IMG/VR virus record: IMGVR_UViG_3300020172_006270
Span: 62,001 to 126,000 of that record
Length of the DNA: 64,000 nt
Reading direction: 5' to 3' (one strand)
Shown here: in pieces, positions 13,074 through 29,458 of the stretch
Numbering within the stretch: the first letter of the stretch is position 1
How the letters are laid out: the number at the start of each line of letters is the position of its first letter
The notes under the pieces: model-generated
The model's input: only the letters and a program-made list of their open reading frames with translations
What the model was told of the DNA's origin: nothing
Databases searched by the model: none
Made by a program: the position numbers and the translations under genes

Positions 13074-13075
13074 AG

Positions 13076-13159
13076 TGACCTCGGTGGGACTTGAACCCAC
13101 ACGTCCTTTCGGACACAAGTTCCTAAGACTTGAGCGTATGCCAATTTCGCCACGAGGCC
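13076..13159 (-). tRNA. tRNA-Leu(TAG), long variable arm
   Basis: cloverleaf, CAAGT-CTTAGGA-ACTTG, GGTTCAAGTCC, A73. Confidence 0.95.
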
Positions 13160-13203
13160 GTTATTTTGCGCATGAGTTCGCCAAATTTTCGTGTTCGCCA
13201 TAC

Positions 13204-13232
13204 ATTTTACCACGTTTTCGGCATCTTGTAAA
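13204..13232 (-). promoter_or_regulatory. sigma70-type phage promoter
   Basis: TTTACA-17nt-TAAAAT with CGTGG. Confidence 0.7.
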
Positions 13233-13235
13233 ACG

Positions 13236-13317
13236 TAGCCCTGGCGGGACTCGAACCCGCAATCCTTTCGGCGACAGATTTTAAGTCTGTTGTGTATACC
13301 AATTCCACCACAGGGCC
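13236..13317 (-). tRNA. tRNA-Leu(TAA), long variable arm
   Basis: ACAGA-CTTAAAA-TCTGT, GGTTCGAGTCC. Confidence 0.95.
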
Positions 13318-13319
13318 GC

Positions 13320-13508
13320 TCATTCGTCTTTATCGTCTTTGTGACAGTCGCAATGACAACCTTTGTGTTTGTTCTTGTATTCTATGTACTTCCTGTATCT
13401 GATTTTATTGTACCAGTTGGTGCCGGTCATTGTTCCTAAAATGGCAAGGATTGCTGTCACCAGGATATAACCAATTTCTAAAAAGCCACCACAAATACAA
13501 GCAATCAT
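13320..13508 (-). CDS. small membrane protein with a Cys/His tail
   Basis: RBS GAGGA, MIACICGG..., one TM helix. Confidence 0.6.
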   Translation of the reverse strand: MIACICGGFLEIGYILVTAILAILGTMTGTNWYNKIRYRKYIEYKNKHKGCHCDCHKDDKDE

Positions 13509-13533
13509 TTCACTGTTCTTTCCTCGGAGTATC

Positions 13534-13577
13534 AAAAAAATGAGCATATCACCTAAGCCTTCTTCGGTGATATGCTC
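13534..13577 (-). terminator. intrinsic terminator downstream of the rRNA-like RNA
   Basis: GAGCAUAUCACC...GGUGAUAUGCUC followed by AUUUUUUU. Confidence 0.85.
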
Positions 13578-13604
13578 CCAGGCACCAGCAATGCAATGCC
13601 GGTG

Positions 13605-13794
13605 TCGAGTGTCAGGTTGGCTCGGCCAGTGTGCTATTACGCCAAAAGGGATCGCAAACAAGGAAGGCCCAAGTTTTCTCCCTACTCTTTGAATGGACCG
13701 GATTGCTCCGGCGCTGTGGCTGCTTCTAAGCCAACATCCTGGCTGTCTTTGTTTCCCCGAAAGGCAGGTCGTACCTTACCTCTAAATCACTCGA
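13605..13794 (-). ncRNA. structured RNA containing a 23S rRNA H42-H44 (GTPase-associated centre) mimic
   Basis: AGACAGCCAGGAUGUUGGCUUAGAAGCAGCCA [20-nt insert] CCAUUCAAAGAGU [41-nt insert] GCGUAAUAGCACACUGGCCGAG, closed by UCGAGUG/CACUCGA. Confidence 0.88.
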
Positions 13795-13840
13795 TCTACC
13801 GTAGTCATTGTATTCACAATGCTTCCTACAGCGGTTTGGC

Positions 13841-14275
13841 TCACTTATCCAACTTGGCAGGCACAGTGCCTTCCTTATTGGACTTGTCGGCAGCGATCTT
13901 TGGCTCAGGAACGAGCCATCGGGTCATTGCCGTAGTCTTAGTATAGCCAAATTGCTGAATGGCAGCGTGATACCCGTCTGCATAATTGTTTTCAGCACCG
14001 CAGAGCTTCAGTGCGTCATCCCAGCCGTCTTGATACGCACCGGGGGTTTGTGGGCCACCGATGCGAATCAGGGCGGCTTTATATCCCTGATCGTAGGTGG
14101 GCTTGCCAGCAAGCTCGGAGATTTCATCCTTGAGAATACGATGCTCGGCATCGTAGATGGAGTTCACCAGCGAGAGTCGCTGATTCTCCTTCTGAATATT
14201 CCAGGTGTGCCACGTCATTGCGCCAATGCACAATGCAGAAATCCCGGCAATGGTCCATCCAGTTTTCGTACTCAT
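13841..14275 (-). CDS. hypothetical membrane-anchored protein
   Basis: N-terminal TM helix; YDQGY/YQDGW/YADGY repeats. Confidence 0.7.
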   Translation of the reverse strand: MSTKTGWTIAGISALCIGAMTWHTWNIQKENQRLSLVNSIYDAEHRILKDEISELAGKPTYDQGYKAALIRIGGPQTPGAYQDGWDDALKLCGAENNYADGYHAAIQQFGYTKTTAMTRWLVPEPKIAADKSNKEGTVPAKLDK

Positions 14276-14356
14276 TTGCAATCTTCCTTCGGGTCTTGGT
14301 TTGGAAATCAACACAAAGTCGGAGTATACAGTCATGGAAGATAAAATCAAGCCGAG

Positions 14357-14773
14357 TTAGCTTGTCTTTTTGTCGCCATCACCACGTTGACGGGCGGCGA
14401 CGTAGAAGACGTAAGAAGTCTTGCTCTGACCCATAGCCATCTTGCTGGGAGATTCGGTTTGTCGGTAGGTAACTGCAAGTTTGGTTGTCGGAGTCTCGTA
14501 GGCCAGCAGTTCTTTCATCCTGGCTAGAATTGATGCAATAAACTGAGGACTGCCTGTGAGTCGCATTCCGTCTTCGCCATATGTGGAACCCTTGTGGGTA
14601 TAGTCAATGGCTTGCATCTGAACGGGCGTATCGGGACGTAAGTTCTTCCAGTAAGCCACAATTTCGTCTTTTGTGGCTTTCCATTTGGTCGATTGCTGAG
14701 AAGGGGCCGCTTGAGGCTGTTGTGCCTGCGGCTGCATTTCTTGCGATCCCATGAATTCCTTGAACGTCATCAT
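14357..14773 (-). CDS. hypothetical protein, possible internal head protein
   Basis: MMTFKEFM..E N-terminus; TATATA-N4-ATG upstream. Confidence 0.75.
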   Translation of the reverse strand: MMTFKEFMGSQEMQPQAQQPQAAPSQQSTKWKATKDEIVAYWKNLRPDTPVQMQAIDYTHKGSTYGEDGMRLTGSPQFIASILARMKELLAYETPTTKLAVTYRQTESPSKMAMGQSKTSYVFYVAARQRGDGDKKTS

Positions 14774-14776
14774 ACC

Positions 14777-15001
14777 TTATATACCGACTTTTGATCTGAT
14801 CTTGTCGCTGTGCTTGTGGACTTTTTTGTGATCCACGCCACCTTTGCGGTATGCCTTGTTCTTTTCTTCGGAATTCTGGTCGCTACAAGCCCCAATTACC
14901 TGATAATCACTGGTATCCGTGCAGTTTCCGATATACGGACCACTGCCCATTTCCCGGAGTTTGGCTTCTCTTGTCTGCATCCAGTCTTTGAATTTAATCA
15001 T
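14777..15001 (-). CDS. hypothetical protein, possible internal head protein
   Basis: MIKFKDWM..E N-terminus; TATATA-N4-ATG upstream. Confidence 0.7.
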   Translation of the reverse strand: MIKFKDWMQTREAKLREMGSGPYIGNCTDTSDYQVIGACSDQNSEEKNKAYRKGGVDHKKVHKHSDKIRSKVGI

Positions 15002-15004
15002 GCC

Positions 15005-15724
15005 TTATATATCACTGGACAAATCTAATGCAATTCCCCACTCTCGGTTTTTATTGGCAACGTAATTTCTAGTAGTTTTCGCCTTATCCAATATTTCAGC
15101 GTTGATCCGCTGGGTTTCTTTGATGTTTTTGTTGCGAAAATTCCTTGCTCGTTCTTTTTCGTTGTGGTCAATTGCTCGGCAAAAACGGAGCGGCGTCTCT
15201 GCGTATTTCAATTTGTTGTGCATTGCTGCACGAAATTCAAAGTCTATATCATCCCAGCCCCAGCCTACGTTCATATCTTCGTTGTAGCCATTGACGCTAT
15301 AGAAGTGTTCTCGACGGACGGCGATTTTCCCACAACTGCCAGACATATTGAACATATCAAATACGGGAGCAGTCATGATGCGATCTTTATTCTGCATGAC
15401 TTCTTGGATCAACTGAACAAAGCCGTCGATCAAGAAATTGTCGGCGTCTAAATTGCAAAGAATATCGCCGGTCGCTTGGCGATGAGCAATGTTTTTGGCG
15501 TGAGATGCCTGAAAGTGTTCGGGAAGCTGAGTTCGATAGTATTTGACGGTTCCACGCTCGATCCAGGGCCGGATATTGTCACGGACCCATTCGTGCATTC
15601 CGTCTTTGCTGCCATAATTAAGCAGCACAAACTCGCAATCTGGTGCGACATGAAGGTTTATGGGCAGGGTTCTCATTAGATGATGAACCCTGCCCATGCA
15701 AGTTGTGCAAAATGATATTTTCAA
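15005..15724 (-). CDS. GT-A glycosyltransferase (GT2/GT7-like)
   Basis: NLDAD, VNGYNEDM..GWGWDD. Confidence 0.88.
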   Translation of the reverse strand: MKISFCTTCMGRVHHLMRTLPINLHVAPDCEFVLLNYGSKDGMHEWVRDNIRPWIERGTVKYYRTQLPEHFQASHAKNIAHRQATGDILCNLDADNFLIDGFVQLIQEVMQNKDRIMTAPVFDMFNMSGSCGKIAVRREHFYSVNGYNEDMNVGWGWDDIDFEFRAAMHNKLKYAETPLRFCRAIDHNEKERARNFRNKNIKETQRINAEILDKAKTTRNYVANKNREWGIALDLSSDI

Positions 15725-15725
15725 A

Positions 15726-16376
15726 TTAGCCCTTCAAGAACAAGGCCATGAATCCTCTTGATAGTGGCGAATCATAATATCCAGTACACCGAGGATGTTT
15801 GGCCAAAGCGAAAATCTTTTCTCTATATTCGCTTTGAGTTTGTGGGCTTGTCCAATCAGGAGCGGAGTCAGACCGATATGGCGAAGTATCGTGAAATACT
15901 GCAAGTTTACGCAGCGTTCCTTTGTTGAGCATAATCTCGCATTCGAGGGGTCTGATCTCAGTCAGACTATCGAAGAATCCAATATCGAATACCATATTGG
16001 ATTGTTGTAAGAATTCAAGAGAATCAACGCAATGTACTTCAGCCCATTTAAGCAAGTGTTCTTCTTCAAGAACGGTTTGCAATCGAACGCATTGGGGTGG
16101 CAGAACTTCGAGAGAATGAACCTTGCCGAAGCCATTGAGTTTGCACGCATGAGCCAGAGCAGTTGTACCGAAGCCTTCCCAGGCACCAGTTTCCAAAACC
16201 AAGTCGGGCTTCAATACTCGAATGGTTGAGTGCAGCCAATTGAGGACTTCATATTCTGTTGAGCCGCCATCGGCTACTTCAAATAAGTCTGCACGTTCCG
16301 CTGCGATGTGTGGGTGAACATCGCATTCTCTAAGAATGGGACTCCAAGCTGGTTTCCAAGTATAATCTCGTTCCAC
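15726..16376 (-). CDS. class I SAM-dependent methyltransferase
   Basis: VLETGAWEG, GFFDS, VFHDT; paralogue of the next gene. Confidence 0.85.
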   Translation of the reverse strand: MERDYTWKPAWSPILRECDVHPHIAAERADLFEVADGGSTEYEVLNWLHSTIRVLKPDLVLETGAWEGFGTTALAHACKLNGFGKVHSLEVLPPQCVRLQTVLEEEHLLKWAEVHCVDSLEFLQQSNMVFDIGFFDSLTEIRPLECEIMLNKGTLRKLAVFHDTSPYRSDSAPDWTSPQTQSEYREKIFALAKHPRCTGYYDSPLSRGFMALFLKG

Positions 16377-16377
16377 T

Positions 16378-17019
16378 TCAACCCCTTAAAAACAAAGCAA
16401 TAAATCCTCTGGATAAAGTCCACTCAAAGTAGCCAGTGCAAAGAGGATTTTTTGCCATGTCGAATATTTTGTTTCTGAATGTGTCTTGTTCTTCTTTGGT
16501 AGTATACACTGTGGTTCGAGTTGCGGCTGTGTCGTGAAACACTGCTATTTTTTTGATTATTCCACGACGCATACAAATCATGCCTTCGTCGGCTTTGATT
16601 TCAATCAAAGTATCGAAGAACCCAATATCAAATATTAGATCGGTTTCTTCTAAAAACTTCATTGAATCGCATTCGTGAACCTCAGCCCATTCACTTAACC
16701 CCTCGTCAGCAAGTCGTTGTCGAACTTGTGCGCAAGTCTCCGGGTTATGTTCAAGAGAGTGAACTTTGCCAAATCCATTTAGCTTGCAGGCGTGAGCCAA
16801 AGCAATTGTCCCCATGCCCTCCCAGGCACCAGTTTCCAAAACCACTTCAGGTTTCATGACCCTAACGGTTGCATGGAGCCAATTCAGAACTTCAAATTCG
16901 GTAGAGCTAGGATCAGCAACATCGAACAAATGTGCTTTTTCACAGGCATCATGCAGATGAATATCAGCTTCGATTTGCAATGGAGTCCATGCAGGCTTCC
17001 AAGTGTAGTCTTTTTCCAT
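16378..17019 (-). CDS. class I SAM-dependent methyltransferase
   Basis: VLETGAWEG, GFFDT, VFHDT; tandem duplicate. Confidence 0.85.
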   Translation of the reverse strand: MEKDYTWKPAWTPLQIEADIHLHDACEKAHLFDVADPSSTEFEVLNWLHATVRVMKPEVVLETGAWEGMGTIALAHACKLNGFGKVHSLEHNPETCAQVRQRLADEGLSEWAEVHECDSMKFLEETDLIFDIGFFDTLIEIKADEGMICMRRGIIKKIAVFHDTAATRTTVYTTKEEQDTFRNKIFDMAKNPLCTGYFEWTLSRGFIALFLRG

Positions 17020-17298
17020 TTAACCGCCTAAAGATATTACCGATGCTGTGACTTCTTCGCCCGCTTCTTTTTGCTTTTGGCATTCTTTGAAAACACAAAT
17101 CATGCACAAAGCCGGGACGTGAGGGTTATTGACTTTCATTGTGGTTTGGCGAGGTCCAATCCAACATCCAACTCCACAATTCTCACAGGGAATCCTACCT
17201 GAACCTGCATGTGGAACATATGGCACATCTTCCATTCCAAGTCGATCTTTGGCTTCGATTGGAATAAGTGCCAATACATTCATTCTTTGCTCGTCCAC
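17020..17298 (-). CDS. hypothetical Zn-binding protein
   Basis: CENC...CMIC. Confidence 0.65.
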   Translation of the reverse strand: MDEQRMNVLALIPIEAKDRLGMEDVPYVPHAGSGRIPCENCGVGCWIGPRQTTMKVNNPHVPALCMICVFKECQKQKEAGEEVTASVISLGG

Positions 17299-17316
17299 GA
17301 TTATTTCCTTCTTGGA

Positions 17317-17550
17317 TTATATATCGCCCCGGCGAATGATCCCGGATTTCATCAGCGATGGAACGTCATTGGGATTAAGACCATGTAATTCTTTGTAGTG
17401 CCTTTGCACCAAGTATCTTTCAACACCAATGCTGAAAGGCATCCATTCACCAAGTTCAGCGGACAGTTTGGTGATTTCCGCTTCTTTGTTTTTGTCCCGA
17501 TAGTGCAGGGGAAGGCCACAAGCACAGCGTTTGACTTGATTTCTACTCAT
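17317..17550 (-). CDS. hypothetical protein
   Basis: MSRNQVKRCACGLPLHY. Confidence 0.6.
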   Translation of the reverse strand: MSRNQVKRCACGLPLHYRDKNKEAEITKLSAELGEWMPFSIGVERYLVQRHYKELHGLNPNDVPSLMKSGIIRRGDI

Positions 17551-17914
17551 CGAACTGCCCTTTTGGAATTGGTCCATATTGTCTTGCCATGCACGCTCTG
17601 AGGTATCGTCTTGTAAGACGTTCAAGGCTTGGCAAATACATGGTGATGAAAGCCTGTCGCAGTTCGCTGATTTCTTTTTTGCCGGGGTTGAAGCCTTTGG
17701 GTCGAAGGTATCCTGATATGCTCACGCCTGTTGGCCGGTGTATCAGAAATACCGCTCGCAACTTTTTGTGTTTTTCGTTTTTGTCTGACCGGACGCAGAC
17801 TTCTCCTGGTCGTATTTTGAATTTTCCAAAAGAATAATCCGACACGCATCTTTGAAGCACGCTGTTGTCAATGTGCATTGATTCTCGAACTTGCGTGGCG
17901 TTAGGTTTTCGCAT
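17543..17914 (-). CDS. hypothetical protein
   Basis: overlap-coupled ORF; AVFLIHRPTGVSI weakly recalls the RF-1 domain but has no GGQ. Confidence 0.55.
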   Translation of the reverse strand: MRKPNATQVRESMHIDNSVLQRCVSDYSFGKFKIRPGEVCVRSDKNEKHKKLRAVFLIHRPTGVSISGYLRPKGFNPGKKEISELRQAFITMYLPSLERLTRRYLRACMARQYGPIPKGQFDE

Positions 17915-18086
17915 TGGCTTTTTGTTTCCAACAGACTGCGTGGTAAATGGCAGGCAATCCATCTATCGCTATGATTTCTGGATCGAGGACATATTTGCGG
18001 TTGATCTTGAGTGCATGGCCGCACTTACGACATTGCCGATTCTTATGCTTGCAATTTTTCGTGACTTTGTATTCGGGTCGCATCAT
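17901..18086 (-). CDS. hypothetical Cys-rich small protein
   Basis: CRKCG...YHAVC. Confidence 0.55.
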   Translation of the reverse strand: MMRPEYKVTKNCKHKNRQCRKCGHALKINRKYVLDPEIIAIDGLPAIYHAVCWKQKANAKT

Positions 18087-18361
18087 CGTTCCTCGATGTC
18101 GGTTCCCCAAAAACCAAATCGGAACCAGAAGGTCTTGCCGTCTTCGACTTGGACTTTATAGATGCGACAATTTTTGCTATGCCAGAACGGTCCAATATCG
18201 AAATGGTGTCGATCTATGCTGGAAACAACATGCTTGTTCGTCGCAGCCCAGGTATTTATTTCCTTTCGGTCGCTGGATTCCTGCGCAGGCAGAATTATGA
18301 GTGCCAATAGCAAAAACACAACAACGACGACAGCCAAAATCTTCTTTTCCATGATCTCCAT
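18083..18361 (-). CDS. hypothetical membrane-anchored protein
   Basis: N-terminal hydrophobic helix. Confidence 0.65.
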   Translation of the reverse strand: MEIMEKKILAVVVVVFLLLALIILPAQESSDRKEINTWAATNKHVVSSIDRHHFDIGPFWHSKNCRIYKVQVEDGKTFWFRFGFWGTDIEER

Positions 18362-18371
18362 CCATAAACGA

Positions 18372-18400
18372 CAAAAGCGTGGTGATTATACCACGCTTTT
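18372..18400 (-). terminator. terminator after tuf, overlapping a CGTGGTATAAT -10 element
   Basis: AAAAGCGTGGT-GATTAT-ACCACGCTTTT inverted repeat. Confidence 0.65.
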
Positions 18401-18408
18401 GCGTTTCT

Positions 18409-19581
18409 TTACAGCAGTTCCGTCACGACGCCTGAGCCAATCGTCATACCGCCCTCTCGGATAGCGAAATGACTGCCTTTTTCAATGGCAATCGGCTTAT
18501 CCAGGGTGATAAACAGGCAAGTGTTCTCGCCCGGCATAACCAATTCGATTCCTTCCGGCATTTCAACAAGGCCGGTGACGTTAGTGGTTCGGAAGAAGAA
18601 CTGCGGCTTATAACCGTTGAAGATCGGGGTGTGACGCCCGCCCTCATCCTTGCCCAAGACGTAAATTTCACTCTTGAACTTGGTGTGAGGTTTGATACTT
18701 CGTGGTTGTGCCACAACCTGTCCACGCTCCACCTGATCGGCTTTGATGCCTCTCAGCAGCAACCCGACGTTCTGACCAGCTTCGCCAAATTCCAATTGCT
18801 TGTTGAAGGCTTCGACGCTGGTGACAACCGATTCCAGAATGTCTCCCAGGCCCAAGATTTCAACTTTGGTTCCGACCGTGACGGTTCCTTGCTCGATCTT
18901 GCCCGTGACTACACAGCCACGACCTTCGATGTTGTGAACGCCCTCGATAGGCATCAAGAAAGGACGGTCAATAGAACGGCTGGGGTCAGGGATATAAGAA
19001 TCCAGAGCCGCCATCAGTTCTACGATGCACTTGCTTGCTGCGGGATCGGCAGGGTTATCCAGAGCGGGCTTTGCGGCCCCACGGATAAAGGGAGTCTTCT
19101 CACCATCGAAGCCATACTTCGTCAGCAAGTCTCTCGTTTCCATCTCGACCAGTTCGAGCAATTCCTTATCCTGAACCAGATCACACTTATTGAGGAACAC
19201 GACAATATCCGGCACGCCCACCTGACGAGCGAGCAGAATATGCTCTTTCGTCTGAGGCATAGGACCGTCTGCTGCATTGACGAGCAATACAGCGCCGTCC
19301 ATTTGAGCGGCCCCGGTAATCATGTTCTTCACATAGTCGGCGTGACCAGGGCAGTCGATGTGAGCATAGTGACGGGTATCCGTCTCATACTCAACGTGCG
19401 ACGTGGTGATCGTTACCGTTTTGGTAACGTCACGAACGGTGCCGCCCTTGGCGATGTCGCCGTATGCTTTCTTTTTTGCGAAACCCTTTTCGGCCTGAAC
19501 AGCGAGAATAGCTGCGGTCAGGGTCGTCTTCCCGTGGTCAATGTGACCAATCGTTCCGACATTGATGTGGACTTTCTTCAC
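18409..19581 (-). CDS. tuf: elongation factor Tu
   Basis: [54 protein letters not shown]; GTG start after AGGAG. Confidence 0.98.
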
Positions 19582-19705
19582 TTTACTTTCTCCTGTGATC
19601 TTTACGATAGATCACTGTTGGAGGTTTTGATCTCTATATCCCCACTACAGAATAGTGTTTCTACTCACAACGAGTAAGAGCCAAGGCATCCAGAAATCGA
19701 AACAG

Positions 19706-19789
19706 TGCCGCTCCCCGGACTTGAACCGGGACGCCGGTAAAGGCATCAGATTTTGAGTCTGACGTGTCTGCCAATTCCACCAGAGCGGC
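19706..19789 (-). tRNA. tRNA-Leu(CAA), long variable arm
   Basis: TCAGA-CTCAAAA-TCTGA. Confidence 0.95.
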
Positions 19790-19802
19790 ATAAACAAAAC
19801 AG

Positions 19803-19877
19803 TGACGGGTGTGGGACTCGAACCCACAAAACCATGATTTTAAGTCACGGATGTCTGCCTAGTTGCATCAACCCGCC
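19803..19877 (-). tRNA. tRNA-Leu(TAA), short variable loop
   Basis: CGTGA-CTTAAAA-TCATG, variable region GTTTT. Confidence 0.88.
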
Positions 19878-19883
19878 ATACAG

Positions 19884-19960
19884 TGCCAGCGGTGGGACTC
19901 GAACCCACAAAACCCCGGCTCTCGACCGGAGATGTCTACCATAGGTTGCATCACGCTGGC
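19884..19960 (-). tRNA. tRNA-Leu(GAG), short variable loop, C33
   Basis: TCCGG-TCGAGAG-CCGGG, variable region GTTTT. Confidence 0.82.
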
Positions 19961-19992
19961 ATATAGTGCCGGATCGCTCCAGCACTAATCTC

Positions 19993-20295
19993 TTAATCCT
20001 CACCACGCAACTCTTTGAGTTGTTCGTTGTAGTCCACGTCAGACTTCAATTCGTGATTGTGCTTTGACCGCTTTGGATACTTGTCGCTATGACAGATGCC
20101 GCACTGCGGATTGCCACAATCGAAAGCGTCTTTCTTACGGAATCGACCCTTCTGTTCATCACATTCACAGTCAACAACATATGCGCTGACGCCAATGCGA
20201 TTTCTTGTCCAGGTTTTGTTGCTCTCAACGTGAGAGCGCCGGTGTTTCTTCCACTCACGCAGAGTGATCTTGTAATCCTCGTGCCACCGCTTCAT
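19993..20295 (-). CDS. small basic Cys-containing hypothetical protein
   Basis: RBS GGAGG; CGNPQCGICH. Confidence 0.75.
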   Translation of the reverse strand: MKRWHEDYKITLREWKKHRRSHVESNKTWTRNRIGVSAYVVDCECDEQKGRFRKKDAFDCGNPQCGICHSDKYPKRSKHNHELKSDVDYNEQLKELRGED

Positions 20296-20376
20296 CGTTC
20301 CCTCCATAATGGGTTTGGGTAATAGGCTCGATGAAGCCGATGATTTGCGTGTGGTGAGTGTTCATGTTTATTCTCT

Positions 20377-20829
20377 CTAGTTAAGGAAGCAACAGTCCGG
20401 GTTGGGACACCAATCTCCGAACTCTTCGGATTGGGTGTCAGAAATCAATCGTGTGTAACAGCAACGGCAATGTCCTTTGACCCACCATGCTGGGCCGAAC
20501 CATCGAAAGCCGCCACGAGTTGTTTCGTAGTAGCATCCAATTCGTTCTAGCCAATCCATAATAGTGTGGGCGATCATTCGCCGTTCAGCATCACGCCATG
20601 AGTAAGGAAATTCATGCCACTCATAGCCATGACCACTTTCTCGGTATTGATGATCTCGACCGAGATACTTCCATGATTTTTGCTTGCGAACAAACTGATC
20701 GTCCCATGCCGTGGGAAGGTTTCGTCTCTTCCCACGGACATAGGGATCATTGCGGTCTTGGTTCGCTCTTATTTCTTGTGTTGTTCTCGGATACCGAAGG
20801 CACGTCGAGAACCATCTTTTCTTTGCCAT
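20377..20829 (-). CDS. basic hypothetical protein
   Basis: RBS AGGAG; RYPRTTQE..RGKRRNLPTAWDD; C-terminal Cys cluster. Confidence 0.75.
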   Translation of the reverse strand: MAKKRWFSTCLRYPRTTQEIRANQDRNDPYVRGKRRNLPTAWDDQFVRKQKSWKYLGRDHQYRESGHGYEWHEFPYSWRDAERRMIAHTIMDWLERIGCYYETTRGGFRWFGPAWWVKGHCRCCYTRLISDTQSEEFGDWCPNPDCCFLN

Positions 20830-20858
20830 GTAGCGTTTCTCCTAAGTGCGGAATGCAC

Positions 20859-20894
20859 TTAAAAGACGCTACCCAGCCTTTCGTGAATTTTCAT
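20859..20894 (-). CDS. putative 11-aa leader peptide MKIHERLGSVF
   Basis: AGGA RBS; stop codon lies in a hairpin that sequesters the RBS of the 20829 gene. Confidence 0.5.
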   Translation of the reverse strand: MKIHERLGSVF

Positions 20895-21028
20895 ACGAGT
20901 CCTTTTACTTTGTTCTTTCAAATATGTGGACTGTCGAATCCTTGACAGTTTTACTTACCGATCATAGGCGATCCTATCGCTACCGGGGTCAGCCTCATGT
21001 TCATCCTGAACATCAGCGTCCACTTCCA

Positions 21029-21541
21029 TCAACCCGTCCAAATTTCTTCTTTTCCAGTCGGCGGGTCATTCAATCTCTTCAAAAATTTACCTGTATATTT
21101 ATGGTCTTCGGGGTTCAAACCCTTCCGCAAATACCGCACATCTGGTGTTACTTCTCGTTCCGAATACTGATATTCAATGCCCAGCCGAGTGTGTTTGATG
21201 ATTTTCTTTTCTTTATCCACCCATTCGTATTCACGAGCCTGATCGACAACTACAGTGCCTTTCATGCCTTCGATGTCGATGTCATATTCGTGCATGTTCT
21301 GGATTTCAATTTCGTCTTCTTCAACCAACGCCCAACAAGGATAGCTGTACCGTTTAGGCGGTGGGTTTTCATGGATCGGTCCACCCATCAACATTCGTCG
21401 CAAGAGAGCCGAGTGGCCAACATCAGCCGAACTTGAACCTCGTTTATTGTCTTCGCAGATATTCATCCACTGGCAAACCATCTTGCAAGCGAACTCACAC
21501 TGCTCACGAGTCAACGATGTAACTTTTTCTTCGTCCATCAT
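21029..21541 (-). CDS. hypothetical protein
   Basis: RBS GGAG; lies between tRNA blocks. Confidence 0.75.
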   Translation of the reverse strand: MMDEEKVTSLTREQCEFACKMVCQWMNICEDNKRGSSSADVGHSALLRRMLMGGPIHENPPPKRYSYPCWALVEEDEIEIQNMHEYDIDIEGMKGTVVVDQAREYEWVDKEKKIIKHTRLGIEYQYSEREVTPDVRYLRKGLNPEDHKYTGKFLKRLNDPPTGKEEIWTG

Positions 21542-21555
21542 ATTCTCCAACAAAG

Positions 21556-21632
21556 TACCCAGGACGGGACTCGAACCCGTAAAACCGATATTTTGAGTAT
21601 CGGATGTCTACCGAAGGTTGCATCACCTGGGC
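21556..21632 (-). tRNA. tRNA-Leu(CAA), short variable loop
   Basis: CGATA-CTCAAAA-TATCG, variable region GTTTT. Confidence 0.88.
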
Positions 21633-21669
21633 ATATTCTACCAAATCTCGTCTTGGCTGTACAGCCAAG

Positions 21670-21757
21670 TGGACAGCGACGGAATCGAACCGCTCCGGCA
21701 CCCACCCTACTTTTTTAATGCCAACGGATTTACAGTCCGCCGTAAGGAACGCTATCC
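21670..21757 (-). tRNA. tRNA-Tyr(GTA)-like, no D-arm, enlarged variable arm
   Basis: acceptor GGATAGC/GCTGTCC-A, GCGGA-CTGTAAA-TCCGT, GGTTCGATTCC. Confidence 0.78.
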
Positions 21758-21814
21758 ATGTTTTCCTAAAAACAGGTGTTTTCCCACATAGGAAAACATG
21801 CGTTTTTAGGAAAG

Positions 21815-21888
21815 TCGCTCCGGTGGGACTCGAACCCACAGCATCCCTGGTTCTAAGCCAAGGTGGTCTGCCAATTGCCTACAGAGCG
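21815..21888 (-). tRNA. tRNA-Leu(TAG), short variable loop
   Basis: CTTGG-CTTAGAA-CCAGG, variable region GATGC. Confidence 0.88.
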
Positions 21889-21894
21889 TTCAAG

Positions 21895-21966
21895 TGGACT
21901 GTGAGGCGCTCGAATCCTCGTCTCAGCGTTTTCAGCGCTGCGCTACACCATCTCAGCTAACAGTCC
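21895..21966 (-). tRNA. tRNA-Phe(GAA), atypical T-arm
   Basis: CAGCG-CTGAAAA-CGCTG. Confidence 0.82.
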
Positions 21967-21974
21967 ATATACAG

Positions 21975-22058
21975 TGTCCGAGGGGAGAGTCGAACTCCCA
22001 CGCCTTTTACGGCACAAGGCCCTCAACCTTGCGTGTCTACCAATTTCACCACTCGGAC
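21975..22058 (-). tRNA. tRNA-Leu(GAG), long variable arm
   Basis: CAAGG-TTGAGGG-CCTTG. Confidence 0.95.
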
Positions 22059-22070
22059 AAAACAAATCAG

Positions 22071-22145
22071 TGGGCTGTCTCAGAGTCGAACTGAGTTCTC
22101 ATGTTCTTCAGACATGCGCTGAATGACCGCACTAGCTCACAGCCC
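22071..22145 (-). tRNA. tRNA-Phe(GAA)
   Basis: CATGT-CTGAAGA-ACATG. Confidence 0.88.
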
Positions 22146-22154
22146 AATATTCAA

Positions 22155-22334
22155 TTATTCTTTTGTTGCTTCTTCAAGTTCCCTGATGCAATCTCGCAAT
22201 GATATTGTTCGTCCATGCTGGACGCCCATTGCAGTCAATGGGTTCATATCTTTTGCGACATTAGGATTCTCTTGAAATCGCTTCAATCGTTCTTTCCATT
22301 TTTGAATCAATTCTTGTATATTTGTTTCTTGCAT
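22155..22334 (-). CDS. hypothetical small protein
   Basis: RBS AAGGA, MQETNIQELI. Confidence 0.65.
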   Translation of the reverse strand: MQETNIQELIQKWKERLKRFQENPNVAKDMNPLTAMGVQHGRTISLRDCIRELEEATKE

Positions 22335-22350
22335 ATTTAATCCTTCCAAG

Positions 22351-22434
22351 TCTCCGGGGGGAGAGTCGAACTCCCACGCCTTTTACGGCACAAGATTCTG
22401 AGTCTTGCGTGTCTACCAATTCCACCACCCGGAG
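22351..22434 (-). tRNA. tRNA-Leu(CAG), long variable arm
   Basis: CAAGA-CTCAGAA-TCTTG. Confidence 0.95.
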
Positions 22435-22441
22435 ATAAAAG

Positions 22442-22530
22442 CGGAAGTCAAGGGAATTGAACCCTTACCGGATATTTCACCGGGCCTGTTTTCAAGACAG
22501 GTGCAACAAACCAATATTTGCCTAACTTCC
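22442..22530 (-). tRNA. tRNA-Ser(TGA)
   Basis: CCTGT-CTTGAAA-ACAGG, long arm, G73. Confidence 0.92.
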
Positions 22531-22555
22531 ATATTGTGTCAACAACTTTGACATA

Positions 22556-22627
22556 GAGGATACACCGGCTTCGACACCGGATATGTCCCGTTTCTAGCAG
22601 GATGAGTTACATTTCTCCATGTACTCC
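22556..22627 (-). tRNA. degenerate tRNA-like element, anticodon AGA (Ser)
   Basis: GGAGTACA/TGTATCC bulged acceptor, GAG/CTC D-stem, TCCTG-CTAGAAA-CGGGA, aberrant T-loop. Confidence 0.5.
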
Positions 22628-22646
22628 ATATCGCATTTGACACAAG

Positions 22647-22733
22647 CGGAAGCCAAGGGAATTGAACCCTCACCGGGATTAACCGGGCCTGTTTTCGAGA
22701 CAGGTGCAACAAACCAGTATTTGCCTAGCTTCC
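22647..22733 (-). tRNA. tRNA-Ser(CGA)
   Basis: CCTGT-CTCGAAA-ACAGG. Confidence 0.92.
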
Positions 22734-22746
22734 ATAAAACAACAAG

Positions 22747-22836
22747 CGGAGGACAAGGGAATCGAACCCTCACCGGGTATTTCACCGGATCGGTTTAGCA
22801 AACCGACGTAGCAACACCACCATCTACCTATCCTCC
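22747..22836 (-). tRNA. tRNA-Ser(GCT)
   Basis: TCGGT-TTGCTAA-ACCGA. Confidence 0.92.
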
Positions 22837-22842
22837 ATTCAG

Positions 22843-22931
22843 CGGAAGCCAAGGGAATTGAACCCTCACCGGATATTTCACCGGACCCGCTTTCCAGGCG
22901 AGCGCAACAAACCAGTATTTGCCTAGCTTCC
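22843..22931 (-). tRNA. tRNA-Ser(GGA)
   Basis: CTCGC-CTGGAAA-GCGGG. Confidence 0.92.
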
Positions 22932-22987
22932 GTGTAATGCACTATACTTTGAACATTAACCAGGGCTAATGTTCATTCTATCGTACA

Positions 22988-23287
22988 TTATGCTTCAACC
23001 TTCACCAACTTGCCAAAGATACAGTTCCGGCCAACCCAGCCATTGATATGGCCTTTGTTGTTGCCGATCTGGAATCGGTCGCCTTGTATTGCTTTGATTA
23101 AGTGCAGGTATTGTTTGCCTGCAACTTTGCACAATACAATGTCGCCCGTATCCAAAACGCCAGTCACCGGCTCGACAGTGCATAACTGTCCTGATTCGAT
23201 CTTCCCGACCATTGAGTTGCCTCGTGGTCGAAACGAAACCGTCTCACCTGTTTGGAGTTTCGCTATGTAACCAGTCGCCCATCCCAT
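22988..23287 (-). CDS. S24/S26 peptidase-like protein
   Basis: RPRGNSM, GDIVLC, YLHLIK. Confidence 0.75.
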   Translation of the reverse strand: MGWATGYIAKLQTGETVSFRPRGNSMVGKIESGQLCTVEPVTGVLDTGDIVLCKVAGKQYLHLIKAIQGDRFQIGNNKGHINGWVGRNCIFGKLVKVEA

Positions 23288-23301
23288 AGTAATTCTCCAA
23301 G

Positions 23302-23385
23302 TGCATCCGGCAGGAATCGAACCTGCATGTCCCGAAGGAGGCTGGGTTACAGCCAGCTAGACCCACCACACTGTCTAACGGATGC
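23302..23385 (-). tRNA. tRNA-Tyr(GTA)
   Basis: GCTGG-CTGTAAC-CCAGC, long arm, atypical D-arm. Confidence 0.9.
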
Positions 23386-24763: not shown

Positions 24764-25045
24764 ATGAAAACCAGTATCGTACACTGTGTTCGTGATGAGT
24801 ACGACGTTTATATCGGGCGACCTTCAATCTGGGGCAATCCTTTCAGTCACAAGCCAAGTTGCTTGGCCGAGATAAAAGTTGCAACCCGCTATGAAGCCAT
24901 CGACAAATATCGGGAATGGATAAAGACCCAACCGGATTTGATGGCTGCTCTTGAAGACCTGCGTGGCAAACGTCTGGGCTGCTGGTGTCGGCCTAAACTC
25001 TGTCATGGTGATGTCCTACTCGAACTGCTTGGAGAATCGGCATGA
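24764..25045 (+). CDS. DUF4326-like protein
   Basis: YDVYIGRPSIWGNPF, LRGKRLGCWCRP..CHGDVL. Confidence 0.88.
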   Translation: MKTSIVHCVRDEYDVYIGRPSIWGNPFSHKPSCLAEIKVATRYEAIDKYREWIKTQPDLMAALEDLRGKRLGCWCRPKLCHGDVLLELLGESA

Positions 25046-26100
25046 GCGATGAAGTCTTGATCTTTAGTGACATTCACATTCACCCGCACAAGCGGAGCAA
25101 TGACCGATTAGAGCATTGCCTGAAGGCACTCGATTGGGTATTCGATGTTGCTGAACAACGGGGTATCACTCAAATCTTATTCGGCGGCGACCTATATCAC
25201 GACCGCCAAAAGATCGAGGTTTATACCTACCAGAGAACATTTGAAACTCTGGAGAAGCGTCTTCGTGGCGGCAAATTCAAACTATATTTGCTGCTGGGAA
25301 ATCACGACCTGTGGTATAACGATAAAACCTCGGTCAGTAGCGTGATCCCATTGTCGGCCTTGCCCGGCGTGCAGATTATATCGCAGCCTGAACGACTCAA
25401 TATCGCTGGATCGAATTGGGACTTTATCCCATTCACTCACAATCCGATAACCACTCTGGAAGAACTCAAGAAAAAGTCGGGCAACCCAGAATACGCTCTG
25501 GGACATATTGCCATCGACGGTGCCATTCTTCATGGCACTCAATATTCTGATGTTGCGATTGAACACGACGGCGACATGGTGAGTGTTGGCGTTAGCTTAT
25601 TCGATCACTATAAGCACACCTTCCTTGGTCACTATCACGCCGAACAGAGGGTCAATGAGAAGGTTGAATATGTTGGATCGCCATTGGAACTATCCTTTGG
25701 CGAAGCCTTCCAGAAAAAGCACATTATCGCTTTCAATGGCAAGACTGGCAAAAGGACGTATATCCCGAACGATTTCAGTCCGGTCCATTTGGTCATTGGC
25801 ATCAAGGATAAAGACAAATACGATCTGACCAATAATTTCGTTCGTATTAAAGTGGATGACATCGGAGCAACCGATTTGGTTGCCATGCGTAAAGAGATGC
25901 TGGAATCCAACAATATGGGCAGCTTGGAAATCAAGCAGCAAAAAAAGATATTGGACCAGCATGTAATCCAAGACGCCAAAGCTATCTTATACACGGGCGA
26001 TGAAATGCTCGCCAAGTATGTTGATGAGATTGGTCCCAAGAATCTTGACCGAGATGAACTTCTCCGTATCGGTCGCAAAATATGTCAAAAAGTGGAATGA
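25042..26100 (+). CDS. gp47/SbcD-like recombination nuclease subunit
   Basis: FSDIH, GGDLY, LGNHD, GHYH, YVGSP. Confidence 0.92.
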   Translation: MSDEVLIFSDIHIHPHKRSNDRLEHCLKALDWVFDVAEQRGITQILFGGDLYHDRQKIEVYTYQRTFETLEKRLRGGKFKLYLLLGNHDLWYNDKTSVSSVIPLSALPGVQIISQPERLNIAGSNWDFIPFTHNPITTLEELKKKSGNPEYALGHIAIDGAILHGTQYSDVAIEHDGDMVSVGVSLFDHYKHTFLGHYHAEQRVNEKVEYVGSPLELSFGEAFQKKHIIAFNGKTGKRTYIPNDFSPVHLVIGIKDKDKYDLTNNFVRIKVDDIGATDLVAMRKEMLESNNMGSLEIKQQKKILDQHVIQDAKAILYTGDEMLAKYVDEIGPKNLDRDELLRIGRKICQKVE

Positions 26101-27409: not shown

Positions 27410-29458
27410 ATGAGAAACCTAACCTTCAAACACATTGCAGCTTGGAATTTCTTGCCCTTCGGTCCCGAAGGCATTCAGTTCCCGTTAAATAAATATGGGA
27501 ACATCATTTTGATTCGTGGAGAGAATCGAGATGCCAGGGCAATTGAGAATCAATTGCCTGATGGACAATCTGAAGAATGCAAGACGAGCAGTAATGGTTC
27601 TGGCAAAAGCTCGCTTCAAGAAATCATTGTTTACGGTCTGTTTGGCAAGACCGTAAAACAAAAATTAGGTGTCAACGATGTCGTTCATAATATTGAACGC
27701 AAAGACTGCAAGATCGAACTTATCTTTGGTGATTATCGCATCATCAGAACACGTTCTGAAGGTGGCGTTAAAACAAAAAACAGCCTGAGACTGTGGGAAA
27801 GTGCCGATGGCATTTGGGACAAAACCACAGAGATCACTCAAGGCACAATGCCGACCACTCAGAAGCAGATCGAAAGCATCATTGGCTTGTCCTATGATGC
27901 CTTTGTGAATATGTGCATATTCACGGACGATCAACGCTTGTGCTTCTTGGAGTGCGATAATCCCCACAAGAAAGAGATCGTAGAAAATCTGCTTTCATTG
28001 GGTGAATATCGAGAGTGGCATGAGAACGCCAAAGAGTTGCGTAAGGCCATCAAGCAGAATATCGACTCGAAGGCCAAAGAATATAACTTGCTATTGTCCA
28101 ACAAGGATGATGCGAATCGTCGTCTTTTGTTGACTGAGAAAAAGCATACTGATTGGCAACTCGCAAAGACGACGGAGATTGCTACACTTGAGAAGTCGAT
28201 CCTGACAAAGAAGCAAGCTCTTGCATCTACAGACAACGGAGCGGCACTTCTGGCCTATCAAGAGGCTCAGGCCAAGATTACCTCAATCAATGATGCCTTG
28301 CCTCCTTTGGAGGTTTCTAAGGCTGACTTTGAGAAGAAGCTCCAATTGGTAAAGGAAAAGGAAGCCGAGATTAAAGTCGAGGCCCAAGAACTCACCAAGC
28401 AATTCGGAGAGTTCTCCACGACTGCCAAAACCAAGTTGGCCGACCGCAAAAAGAAAGAAGCTGAGATTGCTGACTTGGAAAGCAATACGCCCGGCACCCG
28501 TTGCAATAAGTGCCGAAGTGTTGTTGAAGAGGAAAATATCGTTGAATATGTTAATGGTCTGAAATTAGAGATCAACGACATCAATCTTGATATTCAAACT
28601 GCTATGACTGGCGGTAAAGATGTCGCTGCCAAAACCGAAGAACTGAAGCGGCGACAAGACAAAGCTGCGACGATGGTAAAGGCCGTCGAAGCGAAAATTG
28701 CTTCTATCGACAATGAGCTTAGATCATTGCGAAACGATTTGGTCATCGCATCTAAAGTGCGTGAGCCAAAGGCTGACAGTTCTGAAGCTCTCCTGGAACA
28801 AGAGATTGCTCAGATCAAGAATTCAGTCGAAAGTAAGAAGACTGAATTAGCGGGTCGTTCGCCATATCAGGATATTATCGACAACGATAAAGTCGAACTT
28901 GATAGGGTTACGCTTAATGTGGCCGATAAAGAACTTGAGGTAAAAACCCTCGAAACAGAATTGCCATATCTTGATTATTGGATTGCCGGGTTCGGAGAGC
29001 AGGGCATTCGCAAATGGGTTGTGGAAGGCATTATTCCAGAACTCAATACTCGCATCAATTATTGGCTTCAGTTCCTTATCGACAATAAGATCACTCTGAA
29101 ATTCGATAATGAGTTGAACGAAAAAATTGAGCGTAATCCTGTGGATGGTGATCCGTATGTATATCACGCCATGTCCACGGGCCAACGGCGTCGGCTTAAT
29201 CTCGCCGTGAGCCAATCGTTCGCACACGTCATGACCATTAGCTCCGGGTCCATTCCGTCTATTGTGTTTCTTGATGAAGTAAGCACCAACGTCGATCCTC
29301 TGGGCGTCCAGGGCATTTACAATATGATCTGTGAATTGGCCGAGGATAAACAAGTATTTGTAACCACTCACGACCCAGACCTCCTTCGTATGCTCGAAGG
29401 AGCAGACGTTATTAAGCTGGTTCACGAGAATGGGTATACAAAATTGGTTCAAGAATGA
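27410..29458 (+). CDS. gp46/SbcC/Rad50-like ATPase
   Basis: NGSGKSS, Zn-hook CNKC, MSTGQ signature, FLDE, TTH. Confidence 0.95.
   Translation: MRNLTFKHIAAWNFLPFGPEGIQFPLNKYGNIILIRGENRDARAIENQLPDGQSEECKTSSNGSGKSSLQEIIVYGLFGKTVKQKLGVNDVVHNIERKDCKIELIFGDYRIIRTRSEGGVKTKNSLRLWESADGIWDKTTEITQGTMPTTQKQIESIIGLSYDAFVNMCIFTDDQRLCFLECDNPHKKEIVENLLSLGEYREWHENAKELRKAIKQNIDSKAKEYNLLLSNKDDANRRLLLTEKKHTDWQLAKTTEIATLEKSILTKKQALASTDNGAALLAYQEAQAKITSINDALPPLEVSKADFEKKLQLVKEKEAEIKVEAQELTKQFGEFSTTAKTKLADRKKKEAEIADLESNTPGTRCNKCRSVVEEENIVEYVNGLKLEINDINLDIQTAMTGGKDVAAKTEELKRRQDKAATMVKAVEAKIASIDNELRSLRNDLVIASKVREPKADSSEALLEQEIAQIKNSVESKKTELAGRSPYQDIIDNDKVELDRVTLNVADKELEVKTLETELPYLDYWIAGFGEQGIRKWVVEGIIPELNTRINYWLQFLIDNKITLKFDNELNEKIERNPVDGDPYVYHAMSTGQRRRLNLAVSQSFAHVMTISSGSIPSIVFLDEVSTNVDPLGVQGIYNMICELAEDKQVFVTTHDPDLLRMLEGADVIKLVHENGYTKLVQE

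Follow-up and report, generated by a model that had tools for sequence, protein, structure and literature searches.

A candidate tyrosine tRNA with a pseudoknotted, non-cloverleaf structure in phage and bacterial tRNA arrays

Introduction

The window analysed here is a 64,000-nucleotide stretch of viral DNA that corresponds to bases 62001-126000 of a 223-kb IMG/VR virus record (IMGVR_UViG_3300020172_006270), which is about 46% complete and derives from a freshwater metagenome assembly. The minus strand of the window carries, at positions 21670-21757, an 88-nucleotide (nt) gene for a tRNA-like RNA with the anticodon GUA and without a D hairpin. From sequence comparison, we put the probability at about three in four that this is a real, conserved gene for a working tyrosine tRNA (tRNA-Tyr) with a pseudoknotted structure instead of a cloverleaf. 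About 100 distinct homologues are found in viral contigs, in metagenomes and in bacterial chromosomes of Planctomycetota and Verrucomicrobiota. Altogether, the gene recurs in hundreds of tRNA arrays of phages and bacteria, in which the usual tRNA finders overlook it. Their covariation supports with high confidence a pseudoknot between the variable stem and a second helix, named D′, which rebuilds the D stem. A decoding function as tRNA-Tyr is likely.

Structure of the window copy

RNA position p of the pseudoknot tRNA-Tyr corresponds to window coordinate 21758-p. The acceptor strands read GGAUAGC(G) and (C)GCUGUCC and are followed by the discriminator A; no CCA is encoded. A first-pass annotation had described intact acceptor, anticodon (GTA) and T arms, together with a large variable arm whose loop GUAGGG is complementary to CCUUAC. 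The minus-strand sequence agrees with this description, and a GGCA/UGCC stem encloses the loop. CCUUAC and GUAGGG form 6 base pairs (bp), including one G-U pair. The annotation had also stated that 10 nt replace the D-arm. The stretch is indeed short and contains no D hairpin, only GUUCCUUACG lying between the acceptor stem and the anticodon stem, but G8 and G17 of the 10 nt are paired, and 8 nt remain. The parts of the gene are as follows, all on the minus strand.

21670-21757: whole gene, 88-nt pseudoknotted tRNA-Tyr(GUA); covariance model R1, 92.8 bits, E 1.3e-21
21750-21757: acceptor stem 5′ strand GGAUAGCG, 8 nt, pairs with 21671-21678
21748-21749: linker UU, 2 nt, in the place of U8/N9; UU in 84 of 99 members
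21742-21747: D′ helix 5′ strand CCUUAC, running unbroken into the anticodon stem, pairs with 21705-21710
21723-21741: anticodon arm with a 6-bp stem GGCGGA/UCCGUU and the loop CUGUAAA; anticodon GUA at 21731-21733
21719-21722: variable-stem 5′ strand GGCA, pairs with 21697-21700
21711-21718: L2, A/U-rich connector UUAAAAAA, which links the variable stem to the foot of the D′ helix
21705-21710: D′ helix 3′ strand GUAGGG, within the variable-arm loop
21701-21704: L3, UGGG, whose GG is the proposed equivalent of G18/G19 of the D loop and would touch the T loop
21697-21700: variable-stem 3′ strand UGCC, which crosses the D′ helix and makes the fold a pseudoknot
21679-21693: T arm with a 4-bp stem GCGG/CCGU and the loop UUCGAUU
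21670-21678: acceptor 3′ strand CGCUGUCC and the discriminator A (21670)

Homologues and alignments

Eleven loci came from scanning viral contigs for exact matches to an anticodon-arm pattern, and a neighbouring open reading frame used as query yielded three syntenic phage loci. A degenerate pattern matched 113 viral contigs, from which 72 distinct full-length members were taken. The same approach with one genome per species identified true members in Planctomycetota chromosomes (Rhodopirellula, Novipirellula, Neorhodopirellula, Rubripirellula, Bythopirellula and Phycisphaerae) and in metagenome-assembled genomes of Verrucomicrobiota, and a metagenome scan gave at least 120 matches. BLAST searches of GenBank phages (INPHARED) with the window array, the candidate gene and the commonest family member returned no match. 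Two alignments were used. A1 is an unfitted MAFFT alignment of 72 homologues. A3 contains 99 viral and bacterial sequences, aligned to a covariance model in which the acceptor, anticodon, variable and T helices are the only ones specified.

Covariation of the two crossing helices

The D′ helix is paired in 98.8% of cells on A1, with changes on both sides in four of its six pairs. It is likewise 98.8% paired on A3, which was fitted only to the other helices. More than 20 different D′ sequences occur across the family. On A3, the pair 13-57 is CG in 45 sequences, UA in 19, AU in 17, GC in 8 and UG in 7; the pair 14-56 is UA in 38, CG in 33, GC in 10, AU in 8 and GU in 5; and the pair 16-55 is AU in 70, GC in 12, UA in 8 and CG in 3. 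The two strands change together already among the loci collected early (CCUUAC/GUAAGG, CCCUAC/GUAGGG, CCCCAC/GUGGGG, CCUGAC/GUCAGG and CCUCA/UGAGG). RNAalifold predicts the D′ helix on A1 unaided and stacks it directly on the anticodon stem. When the pairing partners are slid along the alignments as a control, whole-structure pairing is 37-56% over A1 and A3; on A3 alone, it falls from 96.8% to 39-52% with a slide of 1-3 columns. Six complementary bases in 88 nt could by themselves arise by chance, and it is this comparative evidence that shows the D′ pairing to be real. Covariation among homologues was the check proposed by the first-pass annotation for the CCUUAC/GUAGGG pairing, which thus proves to be conserved through compensatory changes.

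The variable stem covaries independently of the D′ helix. Its middle pair on A3 is CG in 54 sequences, UA in 15, GC in 13 and AU in 3, and the combinations of its 5′ strand (V5′) and 3′ strand (V3′) include GCC/GGC, GGC/GCC, GUC/GAC, GAC/GUC and GCU/AGC. In an alignment-free test, the complement of V5′ was sought between the D′ 3′ strand and the T stem. The exact Watson-Crick complement of a sequence's own V5′ triplet is present in 93 of 96 distinct sequences. With the V5′ assignments shuffled, the count averages 44.6 and never exceeds 58; like the figures of the Fisher tests, these are not probabilities, because the sequences are related to one another. The complements are class-specific. The GG of L3 was considered as an alternative partner of the variable-stem 5′ strand and was rejected, as this GG is constant while the strand varies among GCC, GGC, GAC and GUC. 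Because the D′ helix and the variable stem cross each other and both covary, the fold is a genuine pseudoknot, which strongly supports the earlier proposal that a pseudoknot-like helix rebuilds the D stem in a non-cloverleaf topology.

Family architecture and a proposed elbow contact

Members of the family are 83-91 nt long and share the following elements, listed from the 5′ end.

Acceptor stem: 8 bp; the eighth pair is GC in 69, UG in 17, AU in 9 and UA in 1
Linker: 2 nt; UU in 84 of 99, as in the window copy
D′ 5′ strand: 6 nt, continuous with the anticodon stem
Anticodon stem: 6 bp, with a 7-nt loop
Variable-stem 5′ strand: 3-4 nt
L2 connector: 3-10 nt, in most cases 6-8, and rich in A and U with few exceptions
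D′ 3′ strand: 6 nt
L3: 4-5 nt, most often YGGN
Variable-stem 3′ strand: 3-4 nt
Connector before the T stem: 2-3 nt
T stem: 4 bp, in which U-U is frequent as the outer pair
T loop: 7 nt
Acceptor 3′ strand: 8 nt
Discriminator: 1 nt, an A in every one of 99 members

The other helices are also well paired on A3. The acceptor helix is paired in 98.7% of cells and shows double-sided changes in all 8 pairs. The anticodon helix is 100% paired, and three of its pairs covary; locus L013, for example, has GGUGGA/UCCAUU. The T stem is 89% paired. The acceptor branch therefore counts 8+4 = 12 pairs, a number equal to that of the canonical 7+5 branch, and the anticodon branch counts 6+6 pairs, the 6-bp anticodon stem and the D′ helix sharing an unbroken 5′ strand.

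L3 varies together with the T loop. A GG at L3 positions 2-3 is accompanied by a T loop that starts with UUC in 77 distinct sequences, and a non-GG L3 (mostly xAG) is accompanied by G-C at T-loop positions 2-3 (such as AGCGUUA and UGCGAUU) in 17 sequences, with one exception each way. The L3 G that is expected to pair with C56 is retained, and the adjacent G-to-A change accompanies a U55-to-G change. This covariation suggests that the GG of L3 makes an elbow contact like that of G18/G19 with psi55/C56, and the GG would thus touch the T loop to form the elbow of the molecule. Because the strand that follows the acceptor stem runs on into the anticodon stem, it can be regarded as the spatial equivalent of the D-stem 3′ strand. 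The variable-loop strand and YGGN would then stand in for the canonical D-stem 5′ strand and D loop, as if the block of D 5′ strand and GG loop had been moved into the variable loop of a frame resembling that of tRNA-Sec and allo-tRNAs. The pseudoknotted RNA is probably still L-shaped.

Two further observations concern the extent of the family. A weaker second match to the family model (42.4 bits) at L043:727-826 on the minus strand adjoins the member at L043:836-924 and may be a divergent tandem copy. Marine metatranscriptome contigs that map to L139:3002-3086 contain a variant with a G-C instead of an A-U closing pair of the anticodon stem and the loop UUGUAAC. The family is wider than the present sample, since the search patterns would miss this variant.

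Probable identity and function as a tyrosine tRNA

Several features point to tyrosine. G1-C72 is found in 95 of 96 sequences on A3, next to the invariant A73. A search pattern that allowed any anticodon returned GTA in 67 of 67 viral matches. An anticodon-free metagenome scan gave the same result: among the 120 matches listed, 111 have a paired D′ helix and all of these have GTA, and the remaining nine do not resemble a tRNA. The gene itself supplies the CCA in 59 of 75 distinct viral members.

The genes occur in tRNA arrays. At least three tRNA genes, all on the same strand, lie within 3 kb of 79 of the 99 members, and a locus contains up to 37 tRNAs. Of the member loci, 32 contain 15 or more tRNAs; in these, each other amino acid is represented in 19-31 loci, and a Tyr gene called by ARAGORN is present in only three. 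The pseudoknot RNA fills this empty Tyr slot, and this is the main argument for its being the Tyr acceptor of the arrays. ARAGORN calls overlap 2 of the 99 members, and a separate cloverleaf Tyr gene is found at ten loci. The pseudoknot form would be the sole Tyr tRNA in most arrays; in the phage studied here, it sits beside a canonical copy. We propose that the RNA is transcribed with the one-strand array, trimmed and given CCA, after which the tyrosyl-tRNA synthetase (TyrRS) of the host would charge it and the product would read UAY codons.

In bacteria, the pseudoknot form is distinct in location from the housekeeping gene. A cloverleaf Tyr gene lies in a Thr-Tyr-Gly-Thr cluster in four of five Pirellulales genomes, and accessory arrays of 16-32 tRNAs house the pseudoknot form. 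Its spread is patchy (6 of 151 sampled Planctomycetota genomes), and such arrays are dense and same-stranded. This setting fits the long tRNA arrays that spread horizontally (PMC8421152), and the pseudoknot tRNA-Tyr has the hallmarks of a component of a long accessory array. Each of the Pirellulales chromosomes concerned (L139, L152, L170, L172, L123 and others) contains one or two dense accessory arrays with 16-32 tRNA genes each, which hold short Leu tRNAs as well as pseudoknot Tyr. Novipirellula sp. SH528 has two arrays, inverted copies of each other at a distance of about 120 kb, and the search pattern for cloverleaf Tyr found none in this genome.

Counter-evidence and alternative explanations

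Besides the relatedness of the sequences, several observations weigh against a working pseudoknotted tRNA-Tyr. The CC that starts the D′ strand and the anticodon-stem ends were fixed in the search patterns, as was the anticodon in the first scans, so that these positions are invariant by construction. The variable stem measures no more than 3-4 bp, and the commonest group has U-U as the outermost pair of its T stem. The GG of L3, which would have to reach the T loop, is followed by only 1-2 nt before the variable-stem 3′ strand. The minimum-energy fold of the window copy, computed from the single sequence, is a different, rod-like structure; as a native structure it was rejected, because the family does not conserve the rod. 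The phage also has a canonical tRNA-Tyr, and the window copy could therefore be redundant. As for transcription, RNA-library contigs do not cover window positions 21684-21754, which one sediment-metagenome DNA contig covers. The Novipirellula-type copy and the next tRNA are spanned by RNA-library contigs in three of four metatranscriptomes (marine, estuary and hypersaline lake), and a spacer further along the same bacterial array has zero depth in these contigs. The cover is weak evidence for expression of the bacterial copy, as it could reflect DNA carry-over and the contigs do not show the ends of the RNA.

The canonical tRNA-Tyr of this phage, which has counterparts at nine other loci, raises the question of whether the RNA folds as described and is not used in translation. 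Whether charged or uncharged, it could act as a decoy or sponge for nucleases or toxins that target tRNA-Tyr, or as a regulatory RNA. Some irregular array tRNAs are charged and unused in translation (Mukai et al., PMC5389517), and array tRNAs have been suggested to act as sponges (PMC8421152). However, the pseudoknot form is the only Tyr-anticodon gene in most large arrays, where the other amino acids are covered, and it conserves features of translation, namely the 12-pair acceptor branch, the 7-nt loop CUGUAAA, A73, the T loop and often an encoded CCA. We consider an RNA outside translation unlikely. Charging with Ser or Leu, the amino acids of the other classes with a long variable arm, would recode UAY codons as allo-tRNAs do with Ser. 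The 8/4 frame and the long D helix resemble those of allo-tRNAs, which have Ser identity and non-Ser anticodons, and the tRNA-Sec model is the best Rfam match. Against this, A73 is invariant, whereas bacterial tRNA-Ser normally has G73. Moreover, the variable arm lacks the free-hairpin form that the seryl-tRNA synthetase (SerRS) grips, GUA is the sole anticodon seen as opposed to the many anticodons of allo-tRNAs, and the RNA fills the one empty slot of otherwise complete arrays. Ser or Leu identity is thus given only a slim chance.

Two further explanations concern the fold and the integrity of the gene. If a single one of the crossing helices existed, the molecule could take one of two forms. 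Loss of the variable stem would leave a plain, bulged extension of the anticodon hairpin, and loss of the D′ helix would leave a variable hairpin and an unpaired D connector, as in D-armless mitochondrial tRNAs. The variable stem was fitted in A3 in addition to being short, and nested alternatives have nearly equal computed energies, which for the window copy are -25.6 and -25.5 kcal/mol. However, each helix covaries in its own right: the D′ helix on alignments that were not fitted to it, the variable stem in the alignment-free test with class-specific complements. This makes a one-helix structure very improbable. Finally, both ARAGORN and Rfam reject the window copy, and the canonical Tyr gene is 1.5 kb away, as could be expected of a decayed tRNA-Tyr pseudogene in which CCUUAC and GUAGGG match by chance. 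Compensatory changes nevertheless preserve every helix across about 100 distinct homologues, which come from phages, metagenomes and two bacterial phyla, and the probability of a pseudogene is negligible. The most probable reading is still a conserved, pseudoknotted tRNA-Tyr that works in translation.

Detection and genomic context

ARAGORN at default settings makes no call at 21670-21757, and Rfam at gathering scores gives no match to the window copy. The top Rfam match is the tRNA-Sec model, which is below threshold with 31.4 bits against a gathering score of 47. Relaxed ARAGORN settings and the mitochondrial mode were also tried and mis-parse the gene, for example with a 2-nt anticodon. ARAGORN identifies 14 tRNAs in the window (seven Leu, two Phe, four Ser and one Tyr-GTA). 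All tRNA genes of the window, at least 15 with the pseudoknot tRNA-Tyr, are on the minus strand between 13.0 and 23.4 kb. The canonical Tyr gene belongs to the same array and is given here as context.

23301-23385, minus strand: canonical cloverleaf tRNA-Tyr(GTA), called by ARAGORN, 1.5 kb from the pseudoknot gene

Over the whole 223-kb record, the tRNAs detectable by ARAGORN (13075-23385, minus strand) comprise Leu, Ser and Tyr, which are the three classes with long variable arms, and Phe only. Since the record is about 46% complete, further tRNAs may lie elsewhere in the genome. A search of the same incomplete record for a synthetase of the TyrRS/TrpRS type (PF00579) found none. A full-length EF-Tu homologue in which the three Pfam domains are all present is encoded within the tRNA region (18409-19581, minus strand). 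Just beyond this region lie genes for a calcineurin-like phosphoesterase (25042-26100, plus strand) and an SMC/AAA ATPase (27410-29458, plus strand), which resemble a nuclease pair of the SbcD/SbcC type; a DUF4326 gene overlaps the start of the phosphoesterase gene.

Directly upstream of the pseudoknot gene, a near-perfect long hairpin (UUUCCUAAAAAC...GUUUUUAGGAAA, with an inner stem) occupies window positions 21759-21816 on the minus strand, and the corresponding hairpin of the related phage locus L013 is longer and nearly perfect with changed bases. This hairpin may be a processing or regulatory element. Downstream, a perfect 18-nt palindrome, CUUGGCUGUACAGCCAAG, lies at 21651-21668 on the minus strand and starts 2 nt past the discriminator. 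Its counterpart in L013 is CUCGGCUGUACAGCCGAG, which is changed in a compensatory manner, and a related hairpin is present in L014. The palindrome could form a hairpin that acts in 3′ processing or in protection.

Comparison with known tRNAs

The pseudoknot form shares with canonical class II tRNA-Tyr the loop CUGUAAA, A73, G1-C72 and, in most members, the T loop UUCRAYU, and its variable stem likewise comes right after the anticodon stem. The anticodon arms of canonical tRNA-Tyr from viral contigs (L004 and L006) and from Pirellulales are nearly identical to that of the pseudoknot form. In contrast to canonical tRNA-Tyr, the pseudoknot form has no D hairpin, an 8/4 instead of a 7/5 acceptor branch and a 6-bp anticodon stem, and its variable-arm loop provides one strand of the D helix together with the GG loop. 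Compared with the cloverleaf, the acceptor stem, the anticodon and T arms with 7-nt loops and the discriminator are all present, with stems of 8, 6 and 4 bp versus 7, 5 and 5 bp. A local D hairpin is missing, and the 8 nt between the stems pair 3′ of the anticodon arm. With no D hairpin and with scores under the threshold of every detector used, the RNA does not count as a cloverleaf tRNA.

Allo-tRNAs of the 8/4 type and tRNA-Sec have a long D stem with a tetraloop and a 6+6 anticodon branch (PMC5389517). The pseudoknot form resembles both in its 12-pair 8/4 acceptor branch, longer anticodon stem, 6-bp D helix, 4-nt GG loop and long variable region, and it occurs, as allo-tRNAs do, in phage and bacterial tRNA clusters. 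However, the D helix of allo-tRNAs and tRNA-Sec is a hairpin 5′ of the anticodon arm, whereas the D strands of the pseudoknot form are split by the anticodon arm. Allo-tRNAs have Ser identity with diverse, mostly non-Ser anticodons, whereas the pseudoknot form has the Tyr-type A73 and GUA only. As its D helix is not a hairpin, its features are of the Tyr type and its anticodon is a single one, the RNA is not an allo-tRNA.

D-armless mitochondrial tRNAs, such as mammalian mitochondrial tRNA-Ser(AGY) and nematode mitochondrial tRNA-Ser, are shrunken molecules with a loose core and no replacement helix. They share with the pseudoknot form a short stretch between the acceptor and anticodon stems, and they too are missed by standard finders. 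In contrast, the pseudoknot form is full-sized, rebuilds a 6-bp D helix, keeps the GG/T-loop pair and is of phage and bacterial instead of organellar origin. It is not a D-armless tRNA of the mitochondrial type, because its connector is paired (98.8%) and the molecule is full-sized. In the tRNA-like structures of plant viruses, such as turnip yellow mosaic virus (TYMV) and brome mosaic virus (BMV), the latter of which accepts Tyr, a pseudoknot builds the acceptor arm at the 3′ end of the genomic RNA, and these structures have no decoding role. Mimicry of tRNA through a pseudoknot is common to them and the phage form, with no relation in sequence or architecture.

The tRNA-Tyr of phage T5 is also phage-borne and has a variable arm unlike that of the host, and resistance to cleavage is a possible functional parallel. 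It has a distinctive variable loop, and no pseudoknot is described for it (PMC13096335). A published description of a pseudoknotted tRNA-Tyr without a D hairpin was not found in the open-access literature and bioRxiv, an absence that is not proof of novelty.

Possible nuclease evasion and short tRNA-Leu genes

PtuAB of Septu and retron-Eco7 stops phages by cutting the variable arm of tRNA-Tyr, and T5 tRNA-Tyr escapes PtuAB through its distinctive variable loop (PMC13096335). Arrays of tRNA genes have been discussed as anti-defence or stress back-up sets (PMC12803027; PMC8421152). By analogy, one may speculate that the tied-up variable arm of the pseudoknot form protects tRNA-Tyr from variable-arm nucleases such as PtuAB of these two systems. 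A phage or an array could then keep translating once the tRNA-Tyr of the host has been destroyed.

A second type of altered tRNA is found in the same arrays. Four tRNAs of 75-78 nt with a class I shape lie on the minus strand of the window (19802-19877, 19883-19960, 21555-21632 and 21814-21888) and have the Leu anticodons UAA, GAG, CAA and UAG and A73. At least three of the four have in common an unusual D arm (GAUGCAAC...GGNAGACAUC) and the 4-nt variable loop UUUU. They stand beside normal tRNA-Leu of 83-85 nt with overlapping anticodons (UAG, UAA, CAA and GAG, plus CAG), and two of the four are missed by ARAGORN at default settings. Short tRNA-Leu (73-78 nt) without a long variable arm is present at 51 of the 99 pseudoknot-Tyr loci, including the Pirellulales arrays. 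Because the same arrays carry both, class II tRNAs with altered variable arms may be a common theme of these arrays, an idea that is tentative and rather doubtful at present.

Significance

To our knowledge, all cytoplasmic and phage tRNAs are taken to be cloverleaves, and departures are known only as shrunken mitochondrial tRNAs and as length variants of the 8/4 or 9/3 type. It is an evenly balanced question whether the RNA described here represents an undescribed natural class of working tRNA-Tyr that is topologically rewired, still L-shaped, widespread in arrays and possibly selected by nucleases. Cultured planctomycetes (Rhodopirellula, Novipirellula, Rubripirellula and Bythopirellula) carry the gene, which makes experiments feasible. 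With 2 of 99 members called by ARAGORN and the window copy assigned to no Rfam family, Tyr is systematically under-reported in the tRNA sets of phages and arrays, and this affects inferences on codon usage and on 'missing' tRNAs. Pseudoknot Tyr and short tRNA-Leu in the same arrays suggest that class II tRNAs of altered structure are a cargo of accessory arrays. If a full-sized tRNA retains its helices and elbow contact while its strands are connected differently, the L shape would be attainable with more than one secondary-structure topology, and the molecule would offer a natural, orthogonal-looking scaffold for tRNA engineering. If the proposed structure and function are true, the cloverleaf would not be obligatory outside organelles, and many phage tRNA sets thought to have no Tyr would actually be complete.

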